Source of the DNA: Diadema antillarum
Taxonomy: Eukaryota
Reading direction: 5' to 3'
Length of the DNA: 64,000 nucleotides
Assembly (NCBI RefSeq): GCF_040938485.1
Contig: NW_027272120.1
Coordinates: 62,001-126,000, forward strand
Below, one piece after another: positions 29,601 to 32,600 of this stretch (positions are counted from its first letter, which is position 1; each line of letters begins with the position of its first letter). Made by a program: the position numbers and the translations under genes. The notes beneath the pieces were generated by a model. That model searched no databases, was not told the origin of the DNA, and saw nothing but the letters and a program-made list of their open reading frames with translations.

Positions 29601-32600
29601 GAGACATCATAGATTAGCCCCACAGAGCATCGTGTAGACTAAAATCGCAAAAAACGCGACATAAAAATATAAAAACACAAAGAATTTTGAATATTTTACA
29701 TTAAATTTAGAAGAAGTTGTCGATTATTCACAAAGTTTTACCGCGTGAACTGTTTGAAACGTTAAAGTTAGACATTTTACCGTAAAATACGAAATTTGAG
29801 CCTCATTTGCCGGTTCTTTTTCTTTGTTGTCTGCTCGGTAAGAGTACGGTGATTTGTGGGTATGAATTGTGATTTGATGGTGCAAGGATTAGGCCTAGGT
29901 GCGAAAGACATCAATTATTCCATTTAATACGAAATTCATGTTCGGAATTATGATGCGATTTTACACCGTGCTTAAAGACAACGTTTTGGAGAGCGGTATA
30001 TTTGAAGTCTATTTTCCAGAAATTGGAGTGAATAATTTTCATAATTTTGGCTTACCAAATTCATAATTTTCAGGACTATGTGAATAACTGGTGCTATTTT
30101 TGGCCGAAATTTTGTCCTCTAAGTACGGTGTAAGAGACGTGTGACGTCAGAAGCGAGAGCCTGGGCGCATTTCACAATTTCACACGTAGAGGGCGTTGTA
30201 TTTTTACTGCTTACAGTCACATGTCGTTGGAGATGACTTCTTGTCGTGCATCCAGCTGTATTTCTCGATAGTTTCAACAAGCCCAATGTCGTTGAAACGC
30301 TCGCTCTCTAGCCAGTCGGCTTGGGGTTTTGCCACTAGCAGCTTGTTGCTGCTTGATACCAATTGCAGGCGTGTACTAGTTTGCTGATGTGAACTACTCT
30401 GCGTGGTCGACTTGGTGTCAACATATTGGTGTCTGCTTTGAATGATTGGAGAAATGCAGTGCAGTTGAGGTGGATGTGACCATCTACCAGCTACACACAG
30501 TTCAACGACAGCTTGGAGTTGAAGTCATCCAAGATGAACGACATGGATGGTGGTGAGGAGAGGAGCCCGCAACCGTCAGGTGGTGGTGTCCAGCCTGATG
30601 ACGTGCGTCCAGAGGACTCGGTGAGTCAGTGTGGCAGCAAGGCGAGCTCCACTTCGTCACGACTGAAAGCCATGGCCAAGAGAGCTGCGTTGGAGGCAGA
30701 AGCAGCTGCCCTGGAGGAGCAGCAGTTGCTGGAGTTGCAGGAACTCCAGTTGAAGCAGCGAAAGAGTCAACTGAAGTTGAGAACGGAACTTCGCATCGCA
30801 AAGGCGGAGGAGGACATATACCAGCAGGCTGAAGCGTCGAGTACGCCTGTTGAGTCTCCAGATGCGAAAGGAAGAGGCGATGACACATTGCCTTACCCAG
30901 TTGGTGGAGTAACAAGTTTGCCTGCTATTCAGATGCTGCAACAAGGTCAACAGCAGCTGGTTGATACCCTTCGGCTCCCACAAGTGCAGCTTATGAAGTT
31001 TGATGGAAACCCTTTGAGGTATTGGGAATTTTGGAAAGGTTTCGAAGTCAGCGTCGATCGTGTTAACGTAGACGACACGGAGAAATTGACACGCCTTCTT
31101 CATTATTGCATCGGTGAGCCAAGGAAGCTGCTTCAAGCGTGTGTTATCATGCCACCTGAGCAAGGATACCAGAAGGCCAAGCAGCTATTGAAGCAGAGGT
31201 TCGGCAACTCCGTTTCCATTGCTGATGCATGGATGAAGAGAATAACGGAAGGCGGAAGGATCTCCCCGCATGATGGAAAGGCCTTGACCGAATTAGCCGA
31301 CGATATGACGGTCTGCTCTATGTCTATGAAGGCGATGGGGTTCGAGAGTGAGCTCTCGCCCCAGAGTGTGCTTCTTGCGATCGTCGGAAGACTTCCGAGT
31401 TTTATCAGAGGGAGATGGCTGACGAGAGTGGCTGCTATTCGGAGTCAGGATAGAGTGCCAAGATTCGACGATTTACTTGAGTTTGTAAGGGCTATGGCAG
31501 TGGAGCAGAACGATCCTGTCTATAGCAGAGGGAATCTTCCTGAGGAGAAGAGCCCACGCCAGGGTACGACAGTAAAGTCACAAAGGAGCTCCAGGCCAAA
31601 GGCATCATTTGCTGTGAGCAGCACATCGAAAGAGGCACTGTGTGTGCGATGCAGTGGCAGGCATCAGTTGCTTGAATGCCAGCAGTTTCAAGGACTGACT
31701 CCAAAGGAACGATTGGGCGTAGCGAGAAAGGAGCGGCTTTGCTTCAACTGTCTCAAACCAGGGCATATGGTGGGAAATTGTCAGTTGAAGAGAACATGCC
31801 AGATCGACGGATGTGGGAGGAAGCATGCCACGCTTCTTCATGTCCCAGCATCTCCTACGCGTGCGCAACCAGAGCCTTCTCAACAAGGAGTTGGGAGCTC
31901 AGAAGGTGAACCTGTCGAGGCGCAGAATGGGTATTCTGTCGCAACCGGTCATGCCACAGGGGCCGGCAGCCAAAAGGTTGTGTTGCCTATTGTTCCGGTT
32001 AGCGTTCAGGCCAAAGGAGGAACAGTGACTGTACAGACGTATGCCTTGTTGGACAGTGGTTCGACCAGCACCTTCTGTACAGAAGACCTTGTGATGCAGC
32101 TGGGGGTTACAGGCAAAAGACAGGTGCTGGCGATGTCTACTCTCGAGAAAGCACGCAGCCAAGTGGAGACCATGGTAACCAGTCTGGTGGTACAGAATCC
32201 AGACATGTCGCATGCCGTTGACTTGCCGACCGTCTATACAAGGAAGTCTCTGAACATCAGCACAGCAAACGTCGCAAGAGCTGAGGATATCGATTCATAC
32301 AGACACCTCTCTGATTTGGATTTTCCTTGTGTGCATCCTGTCAATGTTGAGCTCCTCATCGGTCAAGATGTTCCGGAGGCGGTGATGCCGTTAGAGGTGC
32401 GCTCTGGTGGACCTGGGGAGCCGTATGCCACGAAGACGGCCCTTGGATGGGCACTTCAAGGTCCCTTGAAGACAGGAGAGAAGGGAGATGTGTGCGCACA
32501 TTTCATTTCCAACACAGCTCTTGAAGAACAAGTAAAGAGGTTTTGGACTTTGGAATCTACCGAAAGCCTGTGCAGTAATGAGAAGGCCATGTCAGTCAAT

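Follow-up and report, generated by a model that had tools for sequence, protein, structure and literature searches.

To our knowledge, self-priming of reverse transcription has been demonstrated only for the retrotransposon Tf1, and BEL/Pao elements are treated as tRNA-primed. In Tf1, the complement of the primer binding site (PBS) is the first 11 nucleotides (nt) of the mRNA, and cleavage by RNase H has been shown. Self-priming is established for Tf1/sushi and is predicted for the lineages Tcn1 and TAR; the plant predictions, for Tcn1 (gypsy) and TAR/Houba/Osr-1 (copia), came from complementarity between the long terminal repeat (LTR) and the PBS without tRNA sites (PMC6317226). Self-priming is discussed as exceptional (PMC5445492; PMC3601003), and automated annotation considers no sites other than those for tRNAs (for example, PMC13524379). 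Here we describe an intact BEL/Pao copy at positions 30129-37824 of a 64,000-nt stretch of DNA from Diadema antillarum (positions 62,001 to 126,000 of contig NW_027272120.1, assembly GCF_040938485.1). We refer to this whole stretch as the window, and all of the features of the element are on its + strand. We think it fairly probable that an 11-mer just past the 5' LTR (30500-30510) is the minus-strand PBS of a clade of echinoderm BEL/Pao elements that prime with their own spliced 5' leader, not with a tRNA. The best reading of our comparisons would be Tf1-like self-priming in a third superfamily, with a primer sequence that is created by splicing.

Tf1/sushi elements (Ty3/gypsy chromoviruses) lack a tRNA PBS and have, beside the 5' LTR, an 11-nt site that pairs perfectly with their own 5' leader, a complementarity that relatives retain (PMC6317226; PMC5445492); the echinoderm elements share these features. 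Unlike in Tf1, the complement spans a splice junction and probably lies 60-75 nt into the leader, the elements belong to BEL/Pao, and the cleavage of the leader is a prediction. Our prediction resembles those for the plant Tcn1 and TAR/Houba/Osr-1 elements in that it is computational and starts from LTR/PBS complementarity (PMC6317226), but those plant and fungal elements have no intron in the LTR. With canonical tRNA-primed BEL/Pao elements, the echinoderm clade shares the same Gag-Pol domains, LTRs with TG..CA ends, and a 5-bp target-site duplication (TSD). In contrast to them, it has a self-complementary 11-mer instead of a TGG-type site. For comparison, a BEL/Pao relative from a wasp (L098) has a classical TGG.. 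tRNA site (TGGTCCTTCGAGCCGGA) 1 nt past its LTR, which served as a positive control for our reading of the regions at LTR ends.

Pairing between the leader and the LTR

The 5' LTR of the element ends at 30495 and is followed by CACAGTTCAACGACAGC. An earlier, sequence-only reading of this DNA had proposed that there is no tRNA PBS here and that the leader instead folds back onto its own LTR. On re-reading the sequence, we agree with the first point: no TGG lies within 18 nt of the LTR end (the first is at 30514), and the searches that we made gave no tRNA-like match. As to the second point, an inverted-repeat search recovered a perfect complement of 10 nt (100%) between 30287-30296 and 30501-30510. 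The inner 11-mer in the leader, GTTCAACGACA, begins 4 nt past the LTR end, after the spacer CACA (30496-30499; 0-4 nt in relatives). Its partner in the LTR is a primer-like 11-mer, TGTC|GTTGAA(A), at 30287-30297, which crosses the junction of two putative LTR exons (30290|30291). In sister copies, which have a C and not an A at 30297, the inner helix extends to 11 bp (30500-30510).

A match of this length in one copy could be an accident. Among shuffled LTRs, a 10-nt perfect complement to the first 20 bases of the leader arose in 10/2000, and a single match at ~0.5% is not negligible over a whole-genome scan. However, the same two landmarks (the splice junction and the LTR end) recur with covariation in ten elements. 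These comparative data, which we describe below, refute chance complementarity in a single copy, and we give it practically no weight.

A search for Gag identified many BEL/Pao families in the host assembly, and we read the upstream regions for three of them. The closest proteins were from Lytechinus variegatus, Diadema setosum, and Patiria miniata, plus public contigs. The resulting comparison set has eleven related elements (from three families in the host genome, from Lytechinus, Diadema, and Patiria, and from public contigs). In the ten elements whose LTR is known, an 11-mer of the form GTTCAAYRWCW lies 0-4 nt past the LTR end and has its exact reverse complement in the LTR junction of the same element. 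This junction is uninterrupted in the intron-less LTRs (the window copy, C665, and Patiria) and is split precisely at GTRAGT...YAG in the intron-bearing LTRs (C56 from the host genome, two from Lytechinus, one from Diadema, and four ENA contigs). For instance, C665 (45% Gag identity) has an LTR that ends in ..ACA, then TAAA, and then GTTCAATAACA; the exact complement in its LTR is TGTTATTGAAC (11/11). A twelfth family, represented by LTR-edge contigs only, carries the same 11-mer. The 11-mer lies 0-4 nt past the terminal ..ACA of the 5' LTR in 12/12 families, while a TGG-type site is found at the LTR end in 0/12.

The motif does not extend to every relative. In a relative with 32% identity (L093:2498-3870), the GTTCAA motif is absent; this element has an 11-nt complement of its own, with ATTCTTAGCTG 8 nt past the LTR versus CAGCTAAGAAT at LTR position 728. 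A fish relative (L097) was set aside because of the tandem repeats in its LTR. In Diadema setosum (L089:1670-4000), the 11-mer and the Gag ATG are separated by a ~2.3-kb array whose repeats are ~35 nt long.

The sequence-only reading had suggested looking for compensatory changes in related BEL families, and the inner pairing is indeed conserved and covaries in the ten elements. Of 110 positions, 109 are Watson-Crick pairs, and the sole exception is the A at 30297 in the window copy. Three columns covary: column 1 (T-A/A-T), column 4 (C-G/T-A), and column 5 (G-C/A-T). The ten elements fall into four haplotypes (TGTC|G, TGTT|A, TGTT|G, and AGTC|A), and the C810 element has a fifth (TGAT|A). When the 11-mers were permuted among families, the observed pairing was reached in 7/20000 permutations. 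On the Gag-Pol tree, at least five independent double events are required (at least two in column 5, two in column 4, and one in column 1). The complementarity, together with its position and its covariation, is a direct observation. There are no G-U intermediates among the ten elements, as would be expected if the site were re-copied from the primer in every cycle. The junction-like word CCAATGTCATTGAAC (haplotype TGTC|A) also occurs at 11 scattered places in the host genome.

Alternatively, priming might rely on an RNA of the host, be it half of a tRNA, a stretch from inside a tRNA, or some other small RNA, with the copy in the LTR being incidental. Copia-type elements use internal tRNA segments (PMC6317226), and the 11-mer (GTTCAA..CA) is strongly conserved from sea urchins to a sea star. 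Among the host tRNAs that ARAGORN gave (22 sequences of six types), none has a complement to the leader of 7 nt or more; this set is not exhaustive, and the Rfam tRNA search scored 63 of ~107,000 candidates. ARAGORN also identified two tRNA genes in the window, Ser-GGA (6788-6860) and Ala-AGC (11042-11117), and neither is complementary to the leader. We also searched the host assembly (1.75 Gb, apparently with both haplotypes) with the reverse complement of 30496-30516, allowing up to 3 mismatches, and found no tRNA-like multicopy gene: this 21-mer gave only copies of the element and one unrelated repeat at chance level. There was no Rfam match in window positions 30000-30700. Furthermore, several haplotypes of the 11-mer exist, and at least three of them coexist in the host genome, each matching its own LTR, which argues against a single host RNA as the primer. 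We consider a host primer to be very unlikely.

Some other sequences turned up in these searches. A dispersed repeat of >1 kb, present at ~90 places (for example, G000:C8:5229161-5230181, L031), contains CACAGTTCAACGACAG, which is identical to window 30496-30511. We considered this repeat as a shared PBS or as a gene for the primer and rejected it: it contains no large open reading frame, it lacks an LTR within 10 kb, and a 16-nt match is expected by chance. One copy of the repeat (L043) diverges directly after the 16-nt motif. The other matches with 2-3 mismatches (L039-L046 and L080-L083) were also rejected, as they are not LTR elements. On contigs C173, C742, C1364, C1480, and C374, tRNA-like genes are repeated in tandem every ~326 bp.

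An intron within the LTR

The LTR comes in two forms in the host genome. The short form, as in the window, is on four contigs. On at least seven other contigs, ~815-860 bp come between the first 164 bases of the LTR and its last 205; we call this the long form. The extra piece (~817 bp, GTAAGT...AAG) is inserted exactly at 30290|30291. It starts with GTAAGTAG, and its 3' end has a T-rich tract and then ..ATTAAATCAAG, after which the LTR continues with GTTGAAC. In a long copy, the extra piece is present in both LTRs. Because the short and long LTRs differ by exactly GTAAGT...polypyrimidine-AAG, the difference appears to be a spliceosomal intron within the LTR. The short LTR is the expected product of precise splicing, so TGTC|GTTGAA at 30287-30296 would be an exon-exon junction. 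The second LTR "exon" (30291-30495, 205 nt) would run from the splice acceptor to the end of the LTR.

The relatives have the same arrangement. The donor is GTAAGT or GTGAGT in 9/9 intron-bearing LTRs, and a T-rich tract precedes the acceptors (pyrimidine-rich YAG/AAG). Across relatives, the intron varies from 379 to 1160 nt, and it splits the junction 4+7. Furthermore, there are precise intron-less counterparts: the short versus the long LTRs of the window family; C665 versus C7, which is a second copy of the C665 family and has an intron at the place of the junction (ending in ..TTTTGCAG, then ATTGAAC); and the Patiria LTR, at the homologous place. The intron and its intron-less derivatives are both observed. 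In short, the extra piece in the LTR has the signature of a spliceosomal intron, and the intron-less paralogues indicate that it was removed at the RNA level. Judging from these comparisons, the window copy is an intron-less descendant of an RNA that had lost the LTR intron. Over the 1500 nt past the LTR, the window copy shows 6 differences to a long-LTR copy and 9 to another short copy.

A partial form is found in the C810 family. Its leader has GTTCAATATCA, and its LTR has TGAT, a 10-nt remnant (GTAAGTAGAA), and then ATTGAAC. The remnant is in both LTRs (L085:768-797; G000:C810:1265069-1265097 and 1272959-1272987). A search of the genome found the remnant form in no other copy, and the predicted clean C810 junction was absent as well.

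ATTAAA is found 1-6 nt before the acceptor AG in 5/9 introns (L007:1480-1500; L089, L091, L094, and L096), and we found no consistent poly(A) hexamer in exon 2 of the LTRs. The LTR intron may carry the poly(A) signal of the LTR, in which case the 5' copy would lose this signal on splicing.

Retroviruses show some parallels. HIV-1 has a U5:AUG pairing, and deltaretroviruses and foamy viruses have splice donors inside R. Like these retroviral leaders, the echinoderm elements combine long-range pairing between the LTR leader and downstream sequence with splice signals inside the LTR. In contrast, in retroviruses the acceptor is outside the LTR and the spliced RNA loses the PBS, whereas here both splice sites are in the LTR and the spliced RNA would keep every cis element. 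Ogre-type LTR retrotransposons carry a spliceosomal intron in their coding region. Ogre is thus likewise an intron-bearing LTR retrotransposon, but its intron is not in the LTR and is not tied to priming. Our literature search, whose coverage was incomplete, found neither self-priming in BEL/Pao nor an LTR-borne intron that is tied to priming. In the papers that we searched, we found no description of an LTR with a spliceosomal intron that is conserved, nor of a primer/PBS pair that splicing puts together.

Proposed self-priming by a spliced leader

We propose that priming in these elements would proceed as follows. Transcription would start ~60-65 nt upstream of the splice donor, which is suggested by a conserved TGACGTCA, a GGGCG box, and a TATA-like block. 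In the window, this putative promoter is a conserved block at 30142-30206 that includes TGACGTCA (30142-30149), GAGGGCG (30189-30195), and TATTTTTA (30199-30206). The GC box is ~98-100 nt upstream of the junction (in five elements, checked by eye), the TATA-like box is ~85 nt upstream of the LTR segment that is complementary to the 11-mer, and at the TATA position the sister family L085 carries CTATAAAGG. The stretch from the GC box to the junction showed no sequence conservation among the elements compared.

The 5' copy of the intron would then be spliced out. To the primer, TGTY|RTTGAAC, a short first exon would contribute its last 4 nt and the following exon its first 7 nt. These exons are both part of the LTR, and the primer would be contiguous only after a spliceosomal intron of ~0.4-1.2 kb has been removed. 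The junction would anneal to the 11-mer, the RNA would be cut after ...TTGAAC, and synthesis from that 3'-OH would run across the spacer and U5. Following strand transfer, the 3' LTR of the RNA would serve as the template for the upstream part of the LTR, and the progeny would keep the intron if the 3' copy is unspliced and lose it if the 3' copy is spliced. The window element would be such an intron-less product. Rebuilding the upstream part from the 3' LTR would reconcile the survival of the intron with a primer that forms only once the intron is gone. As a tentative extension, which we consider less likely than not, reverse transcription in this BEL/Pao clade may depend on splicing, with the intron surviving because the 5' copy is thrown away along with the primer and the LTR is rebuilt from the unspliced 3' copy.

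Minus-strand DNA must start next to U5, so the 11-mer sits where the PBS must be. It is the sole conserved feature at that position and it tracks the element's own spliced leader, which makes self-priming the simplest reading.

Several observations weigh against self-priming. First, the complement is probably internal to the leader, ~60-75 nt from its 5' end, so an extra cleavage step has to be assumed; the internal position is suggested by the GTAAGT donor 4 nt into the complementary segment, together with the TATA-like box upstream. Second, the predicted 3' end of the primer is mismatched in the window copy (A, not C, at 30297), which leaves 10 bp. The A is present in both LTRs (at 30297 and 37626, exon-2 position +7), so the change arose before or during the retrotransposition that made the window copy. 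Third, with RNAfold, the 11-bp helix is in the minimum-energy structure for only 2/11 spliced leaders. Fourth, C810 pairs only across a 10-nt bulge (the intron remnant), and in an old copy (C765/C614) the pairing is partly lost; this decay is consistent with its 5% LTR divergence and with CpG changes. Fifth, the host tRNA set (22 sequences, six types) samples the host thinly. Finally, we infer the transcription start, the splicing of the 5' copy, the leader cleavage, and the use of the primer: the two public runs with the element provide contigs only, in which no start site or RNA splicing is visible.

In the contigs of these two small runs, a single joint spans the intron; its run is of unspecified type, and the joint may derive from the DNA of a short copy. 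We also considered the Logan contigs of P0009 as transcripts, and rejected them because they break at the LTR borders. The start of exon 2 (window 30286-30303) has a short (CGCT)n-like run whose length varies relative to the C1099 and C765 copies.

An alternative is a real long-range RNA interaction between the junction and the 11-mer that is not a primer and that marks or regulates spliced versus unspliced RNA. Such an interaction could mask the region next to U5, choose between translation and packaging, or bring the splice sites together, and the primer would be something else. The pairing is contiguous only after splicing, and as long as the RNA is unspliced the 11-mer could link the end of exon 1 (last 4 nt) to the start of exon 2 (first 7 nt). 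Retroviral interactions between U5 and the leader serve such switches, and a long-range interaction would do without the cleavage and the primer that self-priming presupposes. However, the 11-mer is at the PBS position in twelve families, and there is no other candidate PBS there. The 11-mer also drifts with the junction, so no external primer constrains it. Furthermore, perfect Watson-Crick pairs without wobble fit copying better than structural selection, and the helix is not thermodynamically favoured. We consider it rather unlikely that the pairing is only a long-range interaction of this kind.

Outer helices, architecture, and implications

The sequence-only reading had a wider model, in which the leader and the LTR form one long nested stem that acts as a switch for Gag translation and in which transcription might start at 30287 or near 30221. 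The pairings themselves are present. Besides the inner helix, there are two outer pairs of 9 nt (both 100%), 30220-30228 with 30537-30545 (previously given as 30221-30228 with 30537-30544) and 30232-30240 with 30521-30529, and the order of the pairs is nested as claimed. The inverted-repeat search also found the competing local hairpin (30266-30278 with 30291-30303; 13 nt, 85%). The LTR arms of the outer helices (CATGTCGTT and GATGACTTC; 30220-30240) are found in the window family only, and their leader arms (GAAGTCATC and AACGACATG; 30521-30545) overlap the Gag ATGs at 30534 and 30543.

Could the full nested stem (30220-30240 with 30521-30545, plus the inner helix) act as a two-state switch and so tie the translation of Gag to priming or packaging? 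The two perfect 9-bp helices cover both ATGs and are uncommon in shuffles (a 9-nt match between exon 1 and the leader arose in 8/500), and the 361-nt region folds better than shuffles (z = -3.5). The outer pair also echoes the motif of the inner pair, with ATGTCGTTG twice in the LTR and AACGACA twice in the leader. Exon 1 on its own folded no better than shuffles. In the other families, however, the outer helices have no counterpart: complements between exon 1 and the leader are only 5-8 nt, and shuffles reached these in 26 to 494 of 500 trials. With no complement above chance elsewhere, the switch would be at most a feature of one family, and folding does not favour the inner helix in most families. 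We regard the switch as unlikely. Because the outer helices repeat the motif of the inner pair, they may be an addition that is specific to the window family and outside the conserved mechanism.

A start at 30287 would fall 4 nt before the splice donor, which is hard to square with splicing; a start near 30221 is possible. The idea of self-priming thus survives in altered form. The missing tRNA PBS, the pairing between leader and LTR, and the covariation in ten elements all speak for it, while the long nested stem, the Gag switch, and the start at 30287 are set aside. The mechanism that we propose differs because the LTR arm is an exon-exon junction, which lay beyond the view of the sequence-only reading.

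The rest of the element is that of an intact BEL/Pao copy. It is flanked by the TSD TACGG (30124-30128 and 37825-37829). The 5' LTR (30129-30495), which has TG..CA ends and is of the intron-less ("short") form, and the 3' LTR (37458-37824) are both 367 bp, with 0 mismatches between them. The Gag-Pol open reading frame (30534-35888) is a single open frame of 1784 amino acids with the BEL/Pao domain set: Pfam identifies DUF1759, RVT_1, Peptidase_A17, Integrase_H2C2, and DUF5641, all above the cut-off. As in the earlier description, the element is young and intact. A polypurine tract (AAGGGGCCGGGA; 37446-37457) lies just before the 3' LTR; it is conserved in the Lytechinus, Diadema, and Patiria relatives and is the same in all of the relatives compared. 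By its domain set, the TG..CA ends of its LTRs, its short TSD, and the polypurine tract before the 3' LTR, the window element is a BEL/Pao element (Semotivirus).

These elements have practical consequences for annotation. Classifiers that are based on the PBS would miss or misjudge such elements. Furthermore, the LTRs of one family come in two lengths, with and without the intron, which confuses both the definition of families and dating by LTRs. The start, the splice, and the primer can be checked directly, since rich RNA data exist for sea urchins and sea stars, both of which are kept as laboratory animals. More broadly, a whole echinoderm clade appears to have a different and testable solution to priming, which is backed by clean covariation. 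If reverse transcription in this clade does depend on splicing, these elements would be the first self-priming system in BEL/Pao, and the replication of a retroelement would be linked to passage through the spliceosome.

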